The notes beneath the pieces are model-generated. The model worked only from the letters and a program-made list of their open reading frames with translations. It did not search any database and was not told the origin of the DNA. A stretch of DNA of 64,000 bases from Trichosphaerium sp. ATCC 40318 (Eukaryota > Protista > Tubulinea): assembly GCA_038496445.1 (NCBI GenBank), contig JALMLS010000050.1, forward strand, positions 1-64,000, given 5' to 3'. Positions 15,075 through 48,642 of the stretch are shown here, piece by piece. The position numbers were made by a program, and so were the translations under genes. Position 1 is the first letter of the stretch; the number at the start of each line of letters is the position of its first letter.

Positions 15075-18000
15075 ATGAAGCTCGTCCTGCTTTTAGCTAT
15101 CCTATTAGCAGTTGTAACCGCACAGACGTCATTATTTGACGACTTTGTAGACTTCAGCTCCATAGACGCCAACTCAAACGAGCCTTTGGCAACAGCAGTC
15201 GTAAATGGCGCCAATATCATTGGGACAAGACGTAATCTTACACTCACCGTCGGAGACGATAGCAACCCTGCCCTCGAAGGTTCTTGTACCATTGTAGCTG
15301 GTTTCTTTGCTCTCAGTACTGATGTATCAGTCACTGGAGCATGTGAAGCAGACTACAGCGGTCCAGACGGCAATGGTTTCACAACTCCCGTCAATTACAA
15401 CGCACTAGGATGCGGTAAGTGCCTTAGACAATTTCTATCACAACTTTTTTTTTTGTTGTATCTCGGTCATAAGATTCGAAAAAGATAAGGAGCAAAAGTT
15501 GAAATCTTCATTATATCATCTGTAGTGGTCAACTAAGAACTCCGAAAAAAATTAAAAGACAAAATAAAATTTTGGCTTCCTTGCTTTTTTTTTTTGTTAC
15601 ACGTGCGCGTACTGATCTTTTTTTTTTGTTTAGATTGCTGGAATATGAGAATACTTGAATCCGATAATAACGTTGGCTTCGCAATCACAGCAAATAGTCA
15701 AACTTTCGGACCTCAAACGTCCGAGTTCATGCTAGCAGTTGATATTCCTTCCGCTCTTGATCTCTGTATTCCTTTTTTCGGAGACCGCGAAGCATACAAT
15801 GATATTGTCGGTGTTAACTTCAGAGTCGAAGCATTAGTCGCAAACGTCGATGTGAATTTACAATCTGTATGTTGTCAGCCTTCTGTAACTTGCGTGTAAG
15901 TACTTATTTTACTATTTTCCGAAGGTTCTTTTTTTTTTGATTTTCTTTGTTTTTTAGCCACACTATCACTGCTTTGAACGGTGCTGATGTCGATAACTTG
16001 GTTGTTGGCGATGATATCAAATTGTCAATAATGTGCAGAAACTACGAATCTCAACCTGCTGATCTTCAAGAACTCACAGTATCTTTCCCATTTGACAGTG
16101 CTTTTGGTACTTTGGATGCTGGTTCCATCATGTGCGATGGTGATGTTGCTGTACGTATTTTGTATTTTCTTCTTGTTTTTACGTTTCACCGTTTCTCATC
16201 ATTTTATTTTTCAGCCAACTGCTCCAGGAGCAAGTGTTGTCAACAACGCTCTTGAGTTCCAAGCTTCTCTCATTGACGGTGAATCCATCAACTGTATGGT
16301 CGATGTCGCTTTGATCGCAGGTGGATCAGTCGATAATATCGCTGCAAATATCTTCACCAGCCAAGGAGATCCAAGATTTCCATTCCAATCCAATACTGAT
16401 ATTGACAGGCACGCCTCCTTGAAACCAAATTATTTACACATTCATTAACATTTTGTTTAGACAAGGAAGTCTCGAGTTTTGTGAACTTCCAGTACCTGCC
16501 AGTCTCGTAATTGTTGATCCTCCAACCACATTGCCTCCAACAACAGAGCCTCCAACGACAGAGCCTCCAACCACTGAGGTGAGTACCCTATACCAAACTA
16601 CTTTTTTACGTGTATCTTTTTCTCTAAATGATTGTAGCCTCCAACTACCGAGCCTCCTACCACAGAACCACCTACCACTGAACCTCCAACAACCGAGCCT
16701 CCAACTACAGCACCACCTACCACTGAACCTCCAACGACTGAGCCTCCTACTACTGAGCCACCTACCACTGAACCACCAACAACAGAGGTACTAGATTTTT
16801 TTGTTTGTTCTGTTGTGGTTTATTCGTTGTAGCCTCCTACAACGGAACCTCCAACGACGGAGCCTCCAACGACGGAACCTCCAACTACGGAACCTCCAAC
16901 TACGGAGCCTCCAACGACGGAACCTCCAACGACGGAGCCTCCAACGACGGAACCTCCTACGACGGAACCTCCAACAACAGAACCTCCAACTACAGAGCCT
17001 CCTACAACGGAGCCTCCAACTACTGAACCTCCAACAACGGAGGTATCTTTATTTTTGTTTTTTTCTCATCCTCTTACTAAATACTTTTTTAGCCTCCAAC
17101 CACAGAACCTCCAACGACTGAGCCTCCAACAACAGAACCACCTACAACAGAGCCTCCAACAACACAGGTATGATTATCTTTTCTTGATAAATCACTTAAA
17201 AAGCATCTTCACCTTATGTTTTTGTAGCCTCCAACAACACTCCCACCAATCACTACGCCTCCTACCACGGAACCACCAACGACAGAACCACCAACGACGG
17301 AACCACCAACAACAGAGGTACTTACTAAAATTACAATAATTATCTTTTTTTTTCGTGGTGGTTTATTCCTTGTAGCCACCTACAACGGAGCCACCAACAA
17401 CGGAGCCACCAACAACAGAGCCTCCTACTACTGAGCCTCCTACTACTGAACCACCCACCACGGAACCTCCAACAACGGAGGTAATTTTTTTTACAGTTTC
17501 TTTTAAACTATTTTTATGGTCTTTCCTTATCTTATCTTTGTAGCCTCCAACGACTGAACCTCCAACAACTGAGCCTCCAACAACCGAGCCTCCAACAACT
17601 GAGCCTCCTACCACTGAACCACCAACAACGGAGGTATGAACAAAACAAACAACTATTTCTTAATGTTCCTTTTAACTTATTCTCTTGTAGCCTCCAACAA
17701 CTGAGCCACCAACCACTGAACCTCCAACAACTGAGCCTCCAACCACAGAACCACCAACAACTGAGCCTCCAACAACTGAGCCTCCAACAACTGAGCCTCC
17801 AACCACAGAGCCACCAACGACTCAGCCTCCTACTACTTTGCCTCCAACTACACAACCACCAACCACTCTTCCTCCAACAACTGTACCACCAACACCAGTG
17901 CGCTTCGTGTGTGTTTCTCCTCGTATCATTAATGGAGAGTGCGAGTACGTTAACAACTACAACACTTGAATATTTTTATTTCAAATACTGACTTTTATTG

Positions 18001-26598: not shown

Positions 26599-29004
<2,406 letters not shown>

Positions 29005-29499
29005 CTTTAACGTTTTAGTAGCTGGGAACTAATCGAGAAATAGTTAAGTTTCGTTTTAAGCCAGGCTGGCAGTCAGGTGATTACTCCACGTGATGAAGCA
29101 GTGGGACCTGTAAACCTTTTGCCAATACCCTGAATAAAGGCGAGCAAAGTGCTCCAGACACGATTGACTACGAAAGACTTGACATGCATTGATTGTGTAA
29201 TTATTACTCGTGGGCCGAATTCTTTAAAAATACAAATACCCACAACTGTAACGTTTATATACACCAAGACAGGTCATCACCACACCAAAAGGTACGCGTT
29301 ACTCTGAGCATGAAGTATTTTAGAAACATACACCGATAAAAACACATAATTGTTGCGCTTTGAGTTGCTTCCACGCATTGAGGCAAAATTTGGTGGTATT
29401 TTCAACGATTTGTGCTTTCAGAGAGAAATTCGTTCCATAAGCCATACTAATACGCAAAACATAGGGTATGGGCCGTAAGAAAACTAAAGCACTACTATT

Positions 29500-32400
29500 A
29501 TGACCTCATGGAAAGGAAGAATCAACGAGCTTTGTATGAAACGCAGATGGGATTTGCCAAAGTACGTTGTTCTGGCTACTCGCACTTTCTTTTAGGCAGC
29601 TTTTTCAGAGCAGTTTCACAAAAAAATTGTGCCTCCGCCAGGTGTCGCGCTGTTCACACCCATCGCGTAAATACGGTGTTCTAATCGTCGTACAAGGTAT
29701 TCAACCACAGCCGAAGGCCCACCTCACATGCCAAAATATTTTGCTTCTGTAGAGATAGATGGAATGGTATACAAGACGCTGCAACACGCTCGCACTAAAA
29801 AGGTATTCAAAGAACTTTTCGAAAAAATTAGATTTGTTTTTTTCAAGCACAGCGTTTTTCTAATTGTGCAAAATTTGCTCTAAGAGGAAACTCTTCTAAA
29901 ACAACTACACACCGCCGATCATTCAGATCAATTTCAATTTAAGCACGTGTCACGTTTAAGTAAGCTGTCTTTTTTTTTGCATTTTTTCTCTGAGAGGTCT
30001 ACAAAAATTTTGGTGCCCAGCACCTAGCGTTGGGGTTCCTAAACAGGCCTATGGATCGTTTAGATGACTTGAGCTCCCCACCTTACGGCCTGTGGGTTTT
30101 ACACGATCCTATGGAACTTATAGACTCTCAAACTAACGCTGGTAAGTTAGCACAACAACAAGCAGCTAAGGTGGCTTACCTCACAATTACCCAAGTACCG
30201 CAACCCACTGTACAGACACCAAGTAGCTATGGGAGCTACGGTAGCACAGGTAAAAGTGCCAAGTCACTTTTGAACGAACACTGTCAGCGTCACAGGCTCC
30301 CCATGCCTCAAATTGATATCATTAAGATGCGTACGTTGTTTTTTTGTTCTCTGTAAACAAAACGGGATTTTCACCTACGTGCTCTTCCCAATTTACTAGT
30401 CACCTCTCTTATTAAAACTAAAAAGGTTTTACGCCTCAGTTTTTGTAGAGTAGCGTATTAACTTATTATTTTTTAATTTAAAGTCGGGTTCTTAATTTTC
30501 TCCCTTTTAGCTGTTTCGCCAAATAGTATACATGTAAATTACCAAGCTATAACGACATTTGAGGGTAGAAACTTTAGGTCTGATCCAAAAGCAAGAGTAA
30601 AAGAGGCAGACCAGGTAAGAAAAATAAAAAATTATTCAAGTTGGAAGACGAACCTGACATTTTCTGAGACTTTTGTGTTAGGATATAGCGTCTAAGATAC
30701 TCACGTGGTTGATGAGACCGACGAGAGTAGATAATCGCGATGTAGACCAAAAACCAACGCCGCGTCGTGAGTCACATCCTCTTGATCGAGAAATATCTCC
30801 TGGTGGGCTTAGAGGTGGTGGGTTACCTCGTCGTGGACGTACAGATACTACTCATGTCGAAAGTAAAAAACCTAGAATGGAGGTACGAAGAAAATCGATT
30901 TTTTTGTAGTACTGGATCTAAAGGCGAGCTTAGGATCCCTATGGTGATGATTATGGTAGGGGCTATGGCGAGGTATTGTGTTTTTGATTTGATTTTGTGT
31001 TGCTAACAGGTTTTGTGTAGAATTATAATGCGAGCAGGGCTACTGATTCGCGTAGAACACGAGAACGCAGGGTTGATTTTGTACGATAAGACTACTCAGC
31101 TGAGGGAGAAATTATTTACATTTTGATATTTAGGATGATTATGAAGAAAATACAATAGAGGCACGCAATGAACTCAAAGACCATAGACAGGTGAGGTTTT
31201 TGAGTATCTCTTTTTTAATTACTAACAGTTTCTTTTACAGCCTGATCTACAGTTTACTACTCAAGCCAGGGCATCTCCATCGCCGGCGAATAGATCTCCT
31301 GGAAATAAGGACTTGCATGTAAAGATGCATGCAAGTCCTTCAGAACGTGCTGCTCCAAAAAAATTAGGCGAACTGGAACTCCTTTCAGAAAATGTTGTAA
31401 CTCCAAACCCGCGAAACTTTGTATCTCCTAAATTTTCTGACGACGAAGAAGATGTTCCTACGCGCCTCAATCGCCCACCACCAGCAGACTTTGTATCTTC
31501 CCCATACATGGAACCACCTCCACCTAATTTTGCGACTCCAAAAGGGCGCAACCCACCTGCTCCATTTTACGAAGACGATGAAGAAGCTCCTACGTTTCGT
31601 AATCGCCCACCGCCAATTAATAGACTAAGCCCAGAGAAACCTCAATACCAAACTCGCCTTGACGATCTAACAAATCAAGAGACATCTGAACCTCGTTTAC
31701 GACCTTCCTATGCAAAGCGACCAAACCAAGAGACTCCTGAATACAGTTACAGATCTCCTGACGCTTCTCCTTCTAAACGACCAACTCAACAACCTCCTCA
31801 ATACCGCTATCCTCCTGACGATGCGCCTACGCGGCGACAACACCCTGGTTTCGCGGATACAGCACCACCAATACCAGCTGCATCACAGCGTAAACCGTCT
31901 CAGTCTGCAATATCCGAATTGAATGAGATGTGCCAAGAATGGCGATTGACTCCTGTTATATACAAACAAGAAGGTAGAGAAGGTCCAGATCACGCTCCTT
32001 GGTTTCTATTTTCTGTGACTATCTCTGGACGCAAGTTTATGGGAAAATGGCAGCAAACTAAGAAGAAGGCAAAGCATCAATGCGCAAGTAAGGCATTGGC
32101 TTCTTTGAGAGTAGCTGGTAAAGAAAAAGTTGAACAGATGGCGAGGTAACATATTTTTCCGATTTTCTCTCAGAGACAATTTTTGAACTCAATGACTGAC
32201 TCTTTTTTTGAAGTGAATCGATTTTCAACCCACCACCTACACCGTCTTATCAAGAACGTCGTAGACCACCAGTACATTCACAACACCCTGAAGATCGTTA
32301 CGAACGGCCAGAACGTTATGAACAGCGTGGTTCGCAGTATGAGGAGTACCGTAGACCAGAGTATAGATATAAAGAAGAACAGGATAGGAGAGGAGACTAT

Positions 32401-32871
32401 GATAGGTATGCTAGAAGACCAGATGAAGATAACTACCCACGACAAGATCGGAGATACGAACAGGGAGATTACGAGTACTATCCTCAACGTAGGGCACCTC
32501 CACCACAGCGGTATGATGAGTATGGCTACAGTGATTCTCATCAGACACCATATACACAGCAGCGGCCTACTAGGCGGCGCTCTCCTCCGAGAGCACCAAG
32601 ACCTGAATGGGATGATACGCCGCGCGATTCTCACACTCAGCAACGCAGAGCTACTAGATCACCTGCTACGCACTCCCCACCTCACTCACCCCATCCAAGC
32701 GGCCAAGCAGAGTTTCACAGCCCACAATCAGCTAAGCAATCTCCTAAAGCAGCATCTCCAAAATATGTTGATGTTAGTACAGCTGATCTTAATGCTGTCT
32801 TAAGCGCACTTGGAGATGACTTGTCACAAGCTCAGATTGAAAACCTTACTAGGCAGTTAGACAACATGTAA
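29500..32871 (+). CDS. Double-stranded RNA-binding protein with three dsRBDs and Pro/Arg/Tyr-rich disordered regions (DRB-like)
   Basis: dsRBD1 WKGRINELCMKRRWDLPKY..EGPPHMPKYFASVEIDG...TKKLAQQQAA; dsRBD2 AKSLLNEHCQRHRLPMP...VKEADQDIA; dsRBD3 ISELNEMCQEWRL..EGPDHAPWFLFSVTISG..TKKKAKHQCA. No RNase III or deaminase domain seen. Confidence 0.88.
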
Positions 32872-32906
32872 CTTATCCTCCTAACCAGTTAGGAAGATGT
32901 TGTAAA

Positions 32907-33053
32907 TCTTATCACCTCCTAACTAAGGCGGTGGTGGTTGGATCCTTGAGCGTAGTGCCCTATGTCATGATGTGCAAAGTTAATATCATGACCGTAGGTC
33001 ACTACGCCCATTTGTTCGCAATCACCACCGCCATAGTTAGTAGTGTGATAAGA
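32907..33053 (+). ncRNA. Long imperfect RNA hairpin (pri-miRNA-like or 3'-UTR dsRNA element)
   Basis: Nested pairings: TCTTATCAC/GTGATAAGA, CTAACTA/TAGTTAG, GGCGGTGGTGGTTG/CAATCACCACCGCC, GCGTAGTG/CACTACGC, CCTAT/GTAGG, GTCATGAT/ATCATGAC. Wobbles are G-U on the + strand. Confidence 0.7.
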
Positions 33054-33170
33054 CGTATTGTTTAGCTGTCTGGGACTAAAATGAGCAAGACAAAACAATA
33101 ATAATAAAGTATAATCATGTATAACGTAGTCTTTCGTGTTGCTATACTTTCCACAATCCGTGATCAATAC

Positions 33171-35933
33171 ATGGCAGTCTCTGTTATTAAACGACGTCAC
33201 AATGTTGAGTACAACATTGAAGCTGTTTACCTTTTACGATTAAAACTTGCTTTTTTTGGCGTAAGGCAGCAACGGTCAGCGAAAGTAATTGTAGAAAGCA
33301 GAAGTGACATTGTTGTAGCTTGTTGTATATGGCAGCGCGTTACTACGCGACATTCAGTACCGATCAAGGTTCTAAAAGTACTATTTTGCGTAATTCTAAA
33401 CGCGCTAGGTTTTAACCGCGGTAAAGTCGGCCAGGAATCATCACTTGGCTTTACCATAGGCGGAAGGTAGGCTTATATCGTTTTGGAAGGCACTAACCGG
33501 AACAGAAAACCAGGTGACAACATTGTAGCGAAAAAGCTACAATTACAAATAACAGGGCCTGATAAGGTTAAAGTAAAATTATCTATTGCCAGTAATTGGG
33601 TAACAGCAAAGTACACACCACAAAAGGTATGTTGAGTTACATTGTACACTATACAATGCTAATCAACCATAGCCAGGCAATTATGCTGTTTCGGTACAAT
33701 ATGAAAATACAAAATGCTCTCACGACCCTATAAACATAATAATACTCAAGGATTGTGCGTGTACAAGGGTTCATAGCGCATAAATTAACTTTTGTAGCAA
33801 ATACTCCTTCCAGTTCCCCACCTGGTTCAATATCGCCCAGAACATCACCAAGGGGTCAGACTAAGCAACCCAAGCAACCTAAGCAACCAAAGCCGAAAAA
33901 AGAAAAAATCAAAAAAGCAAAAGAAAAACAAGAAGGAAGAAGCAAATTATGGCTAAGCGTAAAAGGAGTATTCTCAACAGGACCTAGTGATGGCGAAAAG
34001 TCACCTAGACAAAAGTCAGCGAAATCTCCAAAAAAACAGAAAAAAGCCGAAAAAGCAGCCTTCAAGAAGAGCCAAAGAGAGGCAAAGAAGAAGAAAAAGA
34101 AAGGAAAAACAACAAAGAAAGCAATGATACAACGAGCTTCATCTGATAAGCATCTGAGAAACAGAAATCCAGAATTCAATAATTTTCCTAAACGTGAAAA
34201 CTTAGAATTTGATCTTGAATTTCCAAGCCGTAAAAACTCTAGACCTAACTGGCTTCAACAAAATGCAACTCCTCCAGTAAGTGTTAGACTTAGAGGAGAA
34301 CAACAAGGTATTTTAAATGTACCACGTGTTTCCAGTATCTGACTTTTTTCAGAAGTTGCACCTCTACCTATTAAAACAAATGAAGCTGCGCCTCCACCTA
34401 TAAAAACAAATGAAGTTGCACCTCTACCTATAAAAACTAATGAAGCTCCTCCACCACCTATAAAAACAGCTCCTAGACCACCAGGTCCACTTATTAGGCA
34501 ACCACCTCCTGAGACATATAAAAGGCCAGCTTGGAATGCTACACCCAAAGCTACACCTACAATACCGACGACAAAACAAGAAAATAAACCCACTTGGCAA
34601 CAACGACAACAGCAACAACGACAACAACAACAAAGACAACAACAACTACAACAGCAACAAAAAGCTAAACCACAGGTAACATACCCATGAAATGATGACG
34701 TTGTTTATCTAACTTTTAAGCAGGTCAACAAACCTACGTATACTGTAGTAACACAACCTAATTCAACTGCAAAACCACAAAGAGCAGTACGTTTCAAAAA
34801 CCGATACGAGCTATTACGGTTTGACTCACATGTTTTTTAGCCAGCTCCTAAAAAGAAAGTAGCTCCTACAACAGCCACTCAAAGCCCAGCAACTAGTCTT
34901 GTATGCTTTCATATAAAGAGTTTATTATAAAGCGCTAACGAACGTATAGGCACCAACAAAGCCTGCAAAAAGACAATTCCGACGTTCAATGTAAGTGACA
35001 TTTTGACACATTCCATTCAGAGAAAACGAAGACTCCACTTTTTTTTCTCTTCTTTCTTCTTGCGTTTCAGCCGCTAACTTCGTGTTTAGGTCTGTTCCTG
35101 CTCTTAATGTTACACAAGGAGATAAATGGCTAAGTCTTATGAACAAGAACAGGTACACCTTTAACAAAATGACAAGGTGCTAATACTTTTCTTTTTTTTT
35201 TCCAGACAAAACGAGCATAACGCTATAAATGCTGAATCAGATGCCCGAACAGCAAAGGGTGTTCAATGGGTTATTAGAGAAATGAAAAAATTAATTAAGG
35301 TCATCATTCAAAATGGAAAAAAAGGTACCAAGACCATGCAGGCAGCCGCTTCGTTTGGTGTTTTTTTTGCCTATTAATTTTTTTCTTCGAAGGGTCTGAC
35401 GGAAAGTATCACATATCTTATGGTGAACTGTTCGAAAAGACTATGGACGCATTTGAAGCTCTATCTGGCACATTACGTGCAGCAAAAAAACAGAAAGTAG
35501 TTTCATACCAAGGAGAGATGTTACTACGTGGAGCGTCAAATAATGTTGACATTACGCTTCTACAAGAAACATTTGACGAGAGTCAAGCCATAAAACAAAT
35601 ACACAACACAAAGGTACTAAGAATCTACCTTGATATTTACTTATATTAACACGTGTTTCACAGGTCACAAGAGGTGCAAAGAAGCCACTAAAGATACAAA
35701 AAGAGGAGAGCGTTTTCCAAAAAGCGACATGTTCGAAATGTCAGAAAACTGTTTATCCAAATGAACGGCTTGCAGCAAATGGACATATAAGACATAAGAC
35801 GTGTTTTACATGTCATGTATGTAATAGCAAGCTACGTATTACAGATTATGCATTTGCGAATGATCGTTTTTATTGCTTGCCTCATTACAAGCGTATAGTA
35901 CAAGAAACTGGAGGTAACTATTCAGGTTTGTAA
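33171..35933 (+). CDS. Actin-cytoskeleton protein: filamin repeat, basic/Pro/Gln-rich linker, Costars domain, LIM domain
   Basis: Filamin repeat GKVGQES..FTI...ITGPD...YTPQKPGNYAVSVQY; Costars GELFEKTMDAFEALSGTLRAAKKQKVVSYQGEMLLRG; LIM CSKCQKTVYPNE...HKTCFTCHVC...YCLPHY. The 5' exons are approximate. Confidence 0.85.
34355..34470 (+). repeat. 30-nt coding tandem repeat, about 4 copies (xAPxPIKTNE)
   Basis: gttgcacctctacctattaaaacaaatgaa-type units repeated in tandem. Confidence 0.85.
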
Positions 35934-43863: not shown

Positions 43864-46800
43864 ATGGAAGTAAATAAGTTTACGCTACTTGGTGGTCCTC
43901 TAACCGGTAAATCGTATGCGTAATTTACCCTTTTTACTTCATCTCAAGTACTAATTTTCTGTTTTCTAAAAAGAGCTTTGGTTGAAAGGGTAAGAATATA
44001 AAGGGAAAAAGAAAACGTTTCACTCTTTCTGTCACGTTTTGTATTTTGTGACTTTGTTTATATCTTTAGTTGGTCAATAATACGTATACAGATCAATGGA
44101 CTCAAACATTTGAAGGCGCGTTAATGTATATATAAGTATTTTAAAACTTTTTCTAGATCATTTTCGTCATCCACTTGTTATTGGTGGTATAATTAATGTC
44201 ATTGATATCACAGGTAACTTCTCTGTTCTTTTTTATTATTTCGTCCCGTACAATTGTAATAATTTATTACAGATGTTAGTGGTGATGCTGACGCACGTGC
44301 GCACATGGAAGGTGTTATAAGGCACGTGAAAATGGACCTCGACGCCAAAACCAAAAAAAAAAACTACCAAACATTCCGAATATATTTTCTTTTGCACTGC
44401 TTTCTCTCATTGTTTGTCTTTAGGGATAACTGGGCTTTCTTGTTAGTTTTCTCAGTTAAGGATAGAGACGGGTATGAATTGGTAAGTACACAATTTGAGT
44501 TGCCGTACTTGGTGTATCTAACCAAACAAACATTAAGATGATTCCATATCATGACAAGTTGAAGGCTATCAAAGGTGACTTTCTTGAGGCGTCACTTTTC
44601 AATAAGGATTAAAATGAGATCTTTTTAGGACCTGCTGGGTTTAAAGTAGTTCTTGTTGGGACTATGAGTGATAGTAAAGATAGATGTATTACAACAGCTG
44701 AAGGAGAGAAAATTGCAGGGTTTGTGTGCTTTCAAATAACGCGTATTTTTGGTGATCTTTCTTAGATATATGAAGTGTGATTATATTGAGACGTCTGCTA
44801 AGGGTGATGTTAATGTATCTACACCTTTTATAAATCTTGCAAAGCAACTTGAAGGATGGGAAATACCAAAAAGAAAAAACGCCCAAAAAAAAAGAAAAAA
44901 AGTAAAACATACTGTAAAAAACTTTACCGTACGTGATATGAGCCCACGTGATTATAATTTTTGATTTTGATTTTTTGTAAGTATTAATTTTTGTTCACGT
45001 GATATTTTAGAAACCTGTTCATCGTAAACGAAAGCAACCTAAAAGAGCGAAACCATTGGCAAGAAAAGGTGTAAAACAAAGAAAGAAAAAAGGCTTTTTG
45101 AAAATATCTTTCTCAAAAAGAAAGCGCCGAAAAGATAATCCAATAACAAGAGCAGAGTTAATGCTACCAAAACGTAGACAAGGACGTCATATAGCTTCTC
45201 AAGGTAAGTAAGAAACAATAGATACAGATACAGCTCAAAGATTTTCATCTCAAAAGAGATGAAAATAAAAAGAAATAGGGTTAACTTTCTTCTATGATTT
45301 TGGCACTTACACTTATTTAGGTATTGCATTGATACTACTTGGTATGGGCTTAAATCCTTTGGGAATGGGTTCAGGTGAAAACAAGCAACCAGAAAGAAAT
45401 TACAACACGTGAGGGTTCCTCCTTCTTTTAAACGAATTTTATCATTACTTCTTACAATAATATAGAGCTCCTACGCCGCGCAAGCCACGGAAGTCTGTCA
45501 AAGAGACGTTCCCTTCTCCTAAGCTAAGAAAATTATCAAGGACAAACACACAGCCAGCAATGCCAACCGTAAGTAAAGATAAGCCACTCTGGCTTTAACT
45601 AAAGTACTCTATTATTAGATGCTCAACTCAAGTTACCGAAATACACGAATTGCCAGTATAAAAAGAAGAAAACATAGTAGCGCCAGAGGACATCGAAGAA
45701 ATATGACCGAAGGTGTCTCATCGCAAGCAATAAAGAGGAATAGTCCTGTAGGCGTTGGTGGAGGCGATTTCTTGTCGGTGGGAACAAGACCACGAGCAAG
45801 TACGTGTCATGTTGTTTGTGCAGCCATTTTTCGATTGTAACACGTGTTAGCGAGTAAATCTAGGTTTGTGCCTCCACCGGACAGAAGAGCACTTATTGCT
45901 GCTATCACTGCAGAATTAATGTCTCCTCTCGTTGATTCATACTCAGAAGAGTCTTATACAGACGATGAGTACTCATACTCTGATGAAGAATACACTGACG
46001 AGTCCGAAGGTAACTGAAAATTATTTGCCATCCTGTTTTCCATTTGCCACTATTTCGATTAGTTTGCCCCTAATCAATGTTACTAGATATAAGTGCAGAA
46101 AACTCTTCTTTAAGTATGGAAAACGCGTCACAATCTTTGAAATCAGCCCCTTCAAGAATAGTTTCTCCAACACCTCGTGCATCTTCTCCCTTGGCTTCTT
46201 CTTTCTCTGCGCCAAGAATTGCAATCAAACATTCCTCACCACTATCAGCTACACAACCACGTGTTGAGATCCGTAGACCTTCTGCAACAAGTGGAGACTT
46301 ACCACCGCGCTTGCCAACGAGACCAAGTTTTGGAACACCACCTCCATCTCCTAAAACAGCTCATAGATTTATAAACCCTCAACCTGCTGTCTTATCGCCA
46401 ACTCCAAAAAGACCATCTCCTTATGGTAGGCCGTCTCTTAGGATGCCTACAAGTCGTTCTCCATCACCACCTGGAACCAGCCCAACGCCGAGCAGATCTC
46501 CTTCACCAACAGCAACCTTAACCACTTTGAGTACTTCACCTTATGGAAGTAGATCACCTTCGCCTCCGACAAGTCCTCTAGCAGTACCAATGAATGGGAG
46601 TAGGTCGCCCTCACCACCATCTCCTGTGTTACCTCGGGTTAATGGACATGAGCAACCAGTATCCCATAAATACTCTGTGAATGGAGGAAGGAAACCAAGT
46701 ACTGTCATCACGCCGGCGTATGATTCCTTTAATTTATATTAAAAAACTGTATTTAACACTTCTTAGTCCGCCATCTCGAAAAAGCCAACAGCCCTCACTT

Positions 46801-48382: not shown

Positions 48383-48642
48383 TAAAAATTTGTATCATAA
48401 AAAAATTAAATGCGTTGATGGAGAATGTCTGTACCTCAAAATACAAACATGCGGTTCCAAAAAGTGATCCATTACTATTTTGGAATCACTGGATTACTAT
48501 TTGGGATCGCCCCTGATTTCACACTTTAATTGTACGACTGAGCGCGAAAAGCGTGCTCTTGCTTAATTCGACGTATTAAGTCCGCTATTACTGTTGCACT
48601 TTGCGTAAACTCACAGGAATAAGTTGCAACACAGCTGCAACT

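Follow-up and report, generated by a model that had tools for sequence, protein, structure and literature searches.

The window analysed here is a stretch of 64,000 nucleotides (64 kb) from the tubulinean amoeba Trichosphaerium sp. ATCC 40318 (assembly GCA_038496445.1, contig JALMLS010000050.1, positions 1 to 64,000 of the forward strand), and the locus in question is a gene whose product carries three double-stranded RNA-binding domains (dsRBDs). The gene lies at 29500-32871 on the + strand, has 10 exons and encodes 791 amino acids. An initial annotation had proposed that this protein binds structures in its own transcript and so sets its own level through splicing and processing of the 3' untranslated region (3'UTR). 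Of all local RNA structures in the window, the two strongest lie in the transcript of this orphan gene: a long imperfect hairpin in the 3'UTR and a short perfect hairpin in exon 9.

Two hairpins in one transcript

The 3'UTR hairpin starts 35 nt past the stop codon, which ends at 32871, and ends 50 nt before an AATAAA. Its minimum free energy (MFE) fold has three G.U pairs, a 9-nt apical loop and several bulges of 1-5 nt. On the + strand it folds at -85.6 kcal/mol (z-score -13.6), and none of 200 shuffled sequences was as stable; with its flanks the value is -89.1 kcal/mol (z -11.8), and the - strand gives -80.1 kcal/mol (z -12.2). Free energy per nucleotide divided by GC content comes to about 1.26, which exceeds the 0.85 often used on this measure for plant microRNA (miRNA) precursors. 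This element is the top inverted repeat and the top fold of the 64 kb, and when all 180-nt windows on both strands were folded it was the sole long single hairpin. The one region of equal energy (-87 kcal/mol at 16.8 kb, - strand) was rejected as a rival, being a 15-nt tandem repeat that pairs with itself and not a hairpin, so the claim of the initial annotation that the longest hairpin in the 64 kb sits 35 nt after the stop of this gene holds.

The two arms of the hairpin are about 88% complementary, and they differ by the three G.U pairs, one A.C pair, about 12 non-pairing mismatches and several indels. These differences look like those of a decaying inverted duplication and speak neither for nor against selection on the RNA. 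Most likely the hairpin is a young, partly decayed inverted duplication. A search of the window that allowed 3 mismatches and a blastn run at word size 7 found no second copy, and no coding origin of the arms turned up within the window by blastn-short, tblastx or Pfam searches of the open reading frames (ORFs) that run through the hairpin. Rfam gave no match at gathering score over the whole window nor at an E-value of 1 over 29400-33300, and a tRNA scan of the window was also negative. Moreover, metagenome contigs searched with the protein and with a two-arm DNA pattern yielded no match to either the protein or the hairpin.

Is the hairpin part of the messenger RNA? Contigs of public runs aligned to 29200-33600 supplied the evidence on coverage and splicing, and transcript-like contigs with the hairpin come from two studies. 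A contig of run X1, an independent run from 2015, matches 32868-33041 without a single difference, and in run X6 91% of the sampled words of 32872-33110 are present, which fits transcripts that extend past the hairpin. Given this coverage by X1 and X6, the hairpin very probably belongs to the 3'UTR of the mRNA. An assembly artefact was considered and rejected, because the arms are imperfect and because the independent run reproduces the hairpin.

The second structure, in exon 9, falls within the part of the coding sequence that specifies a disordered linker. It has a fold energy of -24.2 kcal/mol (z -5.55), and among the perfect short-loop inverted repeats of the window it ranks first in length; contigs of runs X1 and X3 span it without differences. 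To correct for composition, the energies of all 60-nt windows on both strands were regressed on base composition. The top two outliers of the whole window are then the apex of the 3'UTR hairpin (-6.4 standard deviations) and the exon-9 hairpin (-5.8 standard deviations), and once these two are excluded the 60-nt windows in the rest of the gene are average in fold energy. The transcription unit (3.6 kb) makes up 5.6% of the window, and the chance that the second hairpin falls in the same unit is about 0.06, a rough and post hoc figure in that the gene was picked for its first hairpin. The coordinates of these and the other features of the locus are collected in Table 1.

Table 1. Features of the three-dsRBD locus, numbered from the first nucleotide of the window.
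Feature	Position	Strand	Basis or remark
Upstream open reading frame (uORF), 11 codons	29468..29503	+	Sequence read; TGA overlaps main ATG (ATGA)
Coding (CDS) exons 1-5	29500-29561, 29697-29802, 30147-30330, 30511-30614, 30682-30882	+	GT..AG and open frame
CDS exons 6-10	30934-30972, 31021-31080, 31134-31190, 31241-32145, 32214-32871	+	GT..AG and open frame
Intron 1	29562..29696	+	135 nt, GC 0.47
Intron 2	29803..30146	+	344 nt, GC 0.39; branch-point-like ACTAAC at 30131-30136
dsRBD1, canonical (GPPH loop, KK-x-A helix start)	29512..30185, residues 5-69	+	Hidden Markov model (HMM), 1.6e-29
dsRBD2, degenerate, weak	30261..30699, residues 95-158	+	HMM, 1.2e-6, 14.9 bits, full model length
dsRBD3, canonical, single exon (exon 9)	31907..32107, residues 494-560 (HMM match 496-560)	+	HMM, 2e-20
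Perfect 13-bp hairpin (14 bp with one G.U)	31307..31340	+	Exon 9, disordered linker (..NKDLHVKMHAS..)
Imperfect hairpin, 147 nt, 59 bp	32907..33053	+	Fold and pair list
AATAAA, probable poly(A) signal	33103..33108	+	Sequence; putative function

Several other repeats and folds of the window can be recorded here. The third strongest composition-corrected 60-nt structure lies at 48451-48510 on the + strand, where a hairpin stem of about 20 bp, interrupted by one bulge and closed by an 18-nt loop, folds at -26.8 kcal/mol (z -4.1), and at 45241-45266 an AT-rich hairpin stem of 11 perfect base pairs encloses a 4-nt loop. The tandem repeat region at 16519-17894 consists of arrays of a 15-nt unit with the consensus CCTCCAACGACGGAA, which translates on the + strand to Pro-Pro-Thr-Thr-Glu; the arrays have a strong skew of C over G, and RNA of their - strand reaches -105 kcal/mol (z -7.8) through self-pairing of the repeats. 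These arrays probably encode a Pro/Thr-rich repeat protein.

Gene structure, splicing and introns

Joined together, the ten exons form a 791-codon open frame that runs from the ATG at 29500 to a TAA at 32869-32871, with GT..AG at all introns. At about 38% G+C, and with numerous short GT..AG introns that carry CTAAC-like branch sites, the window fits the published Trichosphaerium draft genome, which has 37.7% GC, a mean intron of 75 bp and 8.7 introns per gene (PMC10521059). The public-run contigs directly show the splicing of introns 1, 3, 4 and 9. Run X2, from a relative or strain 95-99% alike, contains spliced contigs that skip intron 3 (30331-30510) and intron 4 (30615-30681), and its record 6 starts with the last letters of exon 1 fused to exon 2, which confirms the splice of intron 1; intron 9 (32146-32213) is skipped by a contig of X1. 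The small exons 6-8, seen in no contig, were placed by their GT..AG sites and the open frame. The junction of exons 2 and 3 is absent from all contigs aligned to 29200-33600, and we infer the splice of intron 2 from the fact that only this join restores an intact dsRBD1. The gene is expressed, its transcript is spliced and its product has three dsRBDs.

Two further details concern the runs themselves. Record 15 of X3 ends at 32131, 14 nt short of the 3' end of exon 9, in SMART template-switch/cDNA primer sequence, which marks that run as cDNA, and X3 sequence also extends over 23 nt of intron 8 (31218-31240). Run X6 comes from the same sample as X3.

Introns 1 and 2 had been singled out in the initial annotation as long, GC-richer and structured elements that interrupt dsRBD1. 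They do interrupt that domain, whose residues are encoded on both sides of them, and they are long and GC-richer: introns 3-9 have GC contents of 0.28-0.37, introns 4-9 measure 48-68 nt, and intron 3 has 180 nt at GC 0.32. The proposed structure did not survive comparison with shuffled sequences. Intron 1 has a z-score of -1.30, with 24 of 200 shuffles as stable, and intron 2 has a z-score of -0.57 as a whole and -1.73 over its last 150 nt, which include the proposed branch-point stem. Structured introns and a splicing switch in intron 2 were therefore set aside as unsupported, the folds being insignificant for whole introns and for parts of them alike.

Retention of intron 2 is a separate matter. 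In X2, over 29693-29956, intron 1 is spliced out and intron 2 is retained, at a depth similar to that of the exons, in two short and shallow RNA contigs: in record 6 the fused exons 1 and 2 are followed by 30 nt of intron 2, and record 7 carries on to 29956 and beyond. Among the X2 contigs no other intron was seen unspliced. With the intron retained, the frame would run for 25 intronic codons before it meets a stop (ORF 29728-29883). Compared with the window, X2 has 5 changes in the 137 nt of intron 2 that are covered and about 3 in 645 nt of exons, roughly a sevenfold rate, and the covered part of the intron is thus under no visible constraint. The 3' end of intron 2 (30030-30146) contains no stop in the frame of exon 3, and an ATG stands at 30043; this is not unusual for 39 codons, and the extra GC at this end of the intron coincides with the open stretch. 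An alternative first exon may begin here, and it would give a protein without most of dsRBD1.

At the 5' side, the uORF that the initial annotation placed over the start codon does exist in the sequence. Among the contigs aligned to 29200-33600, none covers anything upstream of 29693. The upstream neighbour is a divergent gene on the - strand that starts at about 29005, so the transcription start of the dsRBD gene falls within 29005-29500, and the uORF may be part of the 5'UTR. That neighbour (28480-29005) encodes a very acidic N-terminus rich in Asp, Glu and Ser, and it shares about 495 nt of promoter region with the dsRBD gene. On the other side, a 117-codon + strand ORF without a Pfam match (33117-33470) begins 64 nt after the hairpin, just past the AATAAA. 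This ORF may be the first exon of a downstream gene, in which case the tandem genes would be very tightly packed.

A multi-dsRBD protein with matches at domain level only

The dsRBDs were delimited with an HMM built from retrieved homologues and run on the spliced protein and on the six-frame translation of the window. All significant matches in the six-frame translation come from this one gene, and both statements of the initial annotation, that the gene has three dsRBDs and that it is the only dsRNA-binding-protein gene of the window, are borne out. dsRBD1, split by introns 1 and 2, was matched by phmmer to 144 of the 150 retrieved dsRBD proteins, and its unspliced fragments in exons 2 and 3 fall below the Pfam threshold. 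dsRBD2, interrupted by introns 3 and 4, matched 19 of the 150, with per-domain E-values near 1e-3. dsRBD3 matches Pfam PF00035 (dsrm) at 2.5e-12 (47.6 bits, cut-off 23). The RNA contacts of a dsRBD are marked by a GPxH loop and by KKxAK at the start of helix 2. Both motifs are kept in dsRBD1 (GPPH, TKKLAQ) and dsRBD3 (GPDH, KKKAKH), and the translation of dsRBD2 has neither. Judged by these motifs, dsRBD1 and dsRBD3 should be competent to bind RNA and dsRBD2 is degenerate. Degenerate dsRBDs in other proteins serve protein contacts, and dsRBD2, having lost both RNA-contact motifs, may do the same.

The remainder of the protein is proline-rich or rich in Arg, Tyr, Glu and Asp, and about 335 disordered residues precede dsRBD3. 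This remainder found no match in Pfam, in the phmmer set of 150 proteins or, for the C-terminal exon, in the ESM Atlas. Pfam searches of exons 2, 3, 4, 5, 9 and 10 returned dsrm only, with no WW/Rhed and no PF16482, and neither Pfam nor the dsRBD HMM revealed a catalytic domain. HMMER against 1.84 billion representative proteins gave 247 matches, all confined to the dsRBDs and at most 36% identical; no orthologue was among them, and the protein itself was also not recovered. The 10 named best of these 247 are mostly plant DRB1/HYL1-type proteins, together with a whitefly TARBP2, a fish multi-dsRBD protein and a chytrid protein, and among these 10 no amoebozoan protein stood out. In the ESM Atlas, exon 9 has generic dsRBD neighbours, with Staufen one of many (score 0.77), and word searches that used either exon 9 or the last 100 residues found no match. 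Since the matches are at the level of the domain and no orthologue was found, the protein appears to be an orphan, a lineage-specific multi-dsRBD protein of the amoeba. On these generic dsRBD matches it would seem assignable neither to the Dicer/Drosha partners nor to Staufen.

DGCR8 and Pasha have a WW/heme-binding Rhed region followed by two adjacent C-terminal dsRBDs, whereas the dsRBDs here lie at residues 5-69, 95-158 and 496-560 of 791. Staufen has four or five dsRBDs and a C-terminal PF16482, whereas this protein has three and no PF16482 match. The closest neighbours, both by sequence and by language model, are plant DRB1/HYL1 and animal TRBP/PACT/Loquacious, which likewise have several dsRBDs, one of them degenerate. 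TRBP, PACT, Loqs and the plant DRB proteins are compact arrays of two or three dsRBDs in which the last is of the protein-binding type. Here, in contrast, the degenerate domain is the second, the long disordered segment separates it from the third, and the likeness is restricted to the dsRBDs. By description, the protein also resembles Dictyostelium RbdB, the dsRBD partner of the helicase-less Dicer DrnB (PMC4894637, PMC5056781): the lengths are 733 and 791 amino acids, an N-terminal dsRBD is at residues 9-75 in RbdB and 5-69 here, and both have a proline-rich disordered region. RbdB, however, is described with only the N-terminal dsRBD (PMC5056781), and no hairpin is reported for the rbdB mRNA in these two papers (PMC4894637, PMC5056781).

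Possible fates of the 3'UTR hairpin

How might a hairpin of this kind affect the gene that carries it? The reading that we tentatively favour is that the young inverted duplication serves as a substrate for RNase III, either miRNA-like or as a hairpin RNA (hpRNA), and that cleavage lowers the host mRNA. The duplication would fold as RNA into a 59-bp imperfect duplex with the shape of a long miRNA-like or hpRNA precursor; RNase III enzymes of the amoeba, with their dsRBD helpers, would recognise the duplex; and a cut would produce small RNAs, detach the poly(A) tail and thereby reduce the mRNA. If the encoded protein aided that cut, a negative feedback of the Drosha-DGCR8 type would result, a further step beyond cleavage that we regard as improbable. 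We infer the cleavage, the small RNAs and the role of the gene's own protein. In its most elaborate form, which we consider a long shot, the scheme would be a convergent amoebozoan loop in the style of Microprocessor, in which the protein helps a helicase-less Dicer or a Drosha-type RNase III to cut the hairpin in its own 3'UTR (and perhaps the one in exon 9), with retention of intron 2 as a second brake. A self-regulating loop would fit a gene of this kind with hairpins in its own transcript.

Several known systems bear on this reading. Enzymes of the RNase III family and other dsRNA enzymes can target their own transcripts; cases are the E. coli rnc leader, the yeast RNT1 mRNA, self-editing by ADAR2 and the miR838 hairpin in an intron of DCL1. 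In each of these, as in the loop proposed here, the transcript of a dsRNA-recognising factor carries a duplex on which that factor can act, but the encoded proteins there are enzymes, whereas no catalytic domain was found here. Another parallel is the cleavage of stem-loops in the Dgcr8 mRNA by Drosha, the Microprocessor enzyme (PMC3814725). In both cases the mRNA of a dsRBD protein holds two hairpins that resemble primary miRNA stem-loops, here with one in the coding sequence; the known hairpins are at the 5' end of the mRNA, whereas the long one here is in the 3'UTR and its cleavage is a candidate event. Amoebozoan miRNAs are made by a helicase-less Dicer together with a dsRBD protein, and they are mostly young and lineage-specific (PMC4894637, PMC11014262). 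The precursors are long imperfect hairpins, like the apparently young and lineage-specific one described here, although miRNA loci of D. discoideum are mostly intergenic (PMC11014262) and this hairpin, as known from the sequence and the contigs, is in a 3'UTR. The marks of a miRNA locus are a defined hairpin, precisely cut 5p and 3p small RNAs with no others, and an origin outside other structured non-coding RNAs (PMC11014262). With 59 bp and a z-score of -13.6 the 3'UTR hairpin is well defined, and the negative Rfam and tRNA searches speak for an origin outside other structured non-coding RNAs.

A number of observations weigh against RNase III processing of the hairpin. Both strands fold near-equally well, so the fold says little about the strand, and the differences between the arms could equally be the result of selection or of neutral decay of a duplication. 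The contigs run through the hairpin, which means that not all of the RNA is cut. By their nature, run contigs reveal neither RNA ends nor strand, and the RNA or DNA type assigned to X1, X3 and X6 is a guess. Finally, word searches, HMMER and the metagenome contigs retrieved no orthologous locus in which covariation of the stems could be followed.

The strongest competitor holds that both hairpins are recent inverted duplications, produced for example by template switches during replication in a genome where such events come easily, and that they are tolerated in a 3'UTR and in a disordered linker and have no regulatory role. We judge this somewhat unlikely in its own right and almost as likely as processing by RNase III. 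The arms, in which indels and every sort of mismatch occur and G.U is not significantly more frequent than A.C, look as such a history would predict, as do the folding of both strands and the lack of a conserved counterpart in the metagenome contigs. It is harder to reconcile with the finding that the two strongest structures of 64 kb lie within the one 3.6-kb unit that encodes the window's only dsRBD protein (the chance of about 0.06 given above), and a cell with Dicers would hardly be expected to ignore a 59-bp duplex in an expressed mRNA. Perhaps the duplication is instead a small foldback or insertion of the miniature inverted-repeat transposable element (MITE) type in the 3'UTR, as the inverted-repeat shape with a short central spacer could suggest. 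No target-site duplication is visible at the hairpin ends, no second copy exists in the window or the metagenome contigs, and no Pfam-matching ORF lies inside, which makes a mobile element the least likely of the explanations considered.

The full circuit of the initial annotation, in which the dsRBD protein attaches to the pre-mRNA and mRNA of its own gene and its level is set through splicing of introns 1 and 2, hairpin processing and the uORF, goes well beyond cleavage and appears unlikely. It gains from the position of the long hairpin in the gene's own 3'UTR and from the additional exonic hairpin, from the retention of intron 2 with its early stop in X2 contigs in which intron 1 is spliced, and from the precedent of Drosha and the Dgcr8 mRNA (PMC3814725). 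Set against these are introns 1 and 2 that are no more structured than chance, about seven times more divergence in the covered half of intron 2 than in the exons, a protein whose generic dsRBD matches leave its family and partners unplaced, a uORF covered by no contig, and a retention event that rests on two short contigs. Alternatively, the hairpin could be a cis element for other factors, either a localisation or decay site of the Staufen type or a barrier against transcription into the downstream gene, which starts at about 33117-33173. Staufen-type proteins use long 3'UTR duplexes, and there are only about 245-300 nt between the stop codon and the next + strand ORF. We nevertheless find this very unlikely: nothing at the locus identifies such a factor, the hairpin lies upstream of the AATAAA and not after it, and the words of X6 reach to about 33110.

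Hairpins in the mRNAs of dsRNA pathways and self-regulation by RNA-binding proteins are already known; what would be new here is the unexplored amoeba lineage and the position in the 3'UTR. Should neither processing of the hairpin nor participation of the protein be borne out, what is left is an ordinary dsRBD gene whose 3'UTR contains a decaying inverted duplication. Were the hairpin processed, it would count as a miRNA-like or hpRNA locus in a tubulinean amoeba; published work on amoebozoan miRNAs covered Acanthamoeba, Physarum and the dictyostelids, and not the tubulinean branch (PMC11014262). If, in addition, the encoded protein takes part, the locus would show that a feedback loop like that of Drosha and DGCR8 has arisen convergently outside animals.

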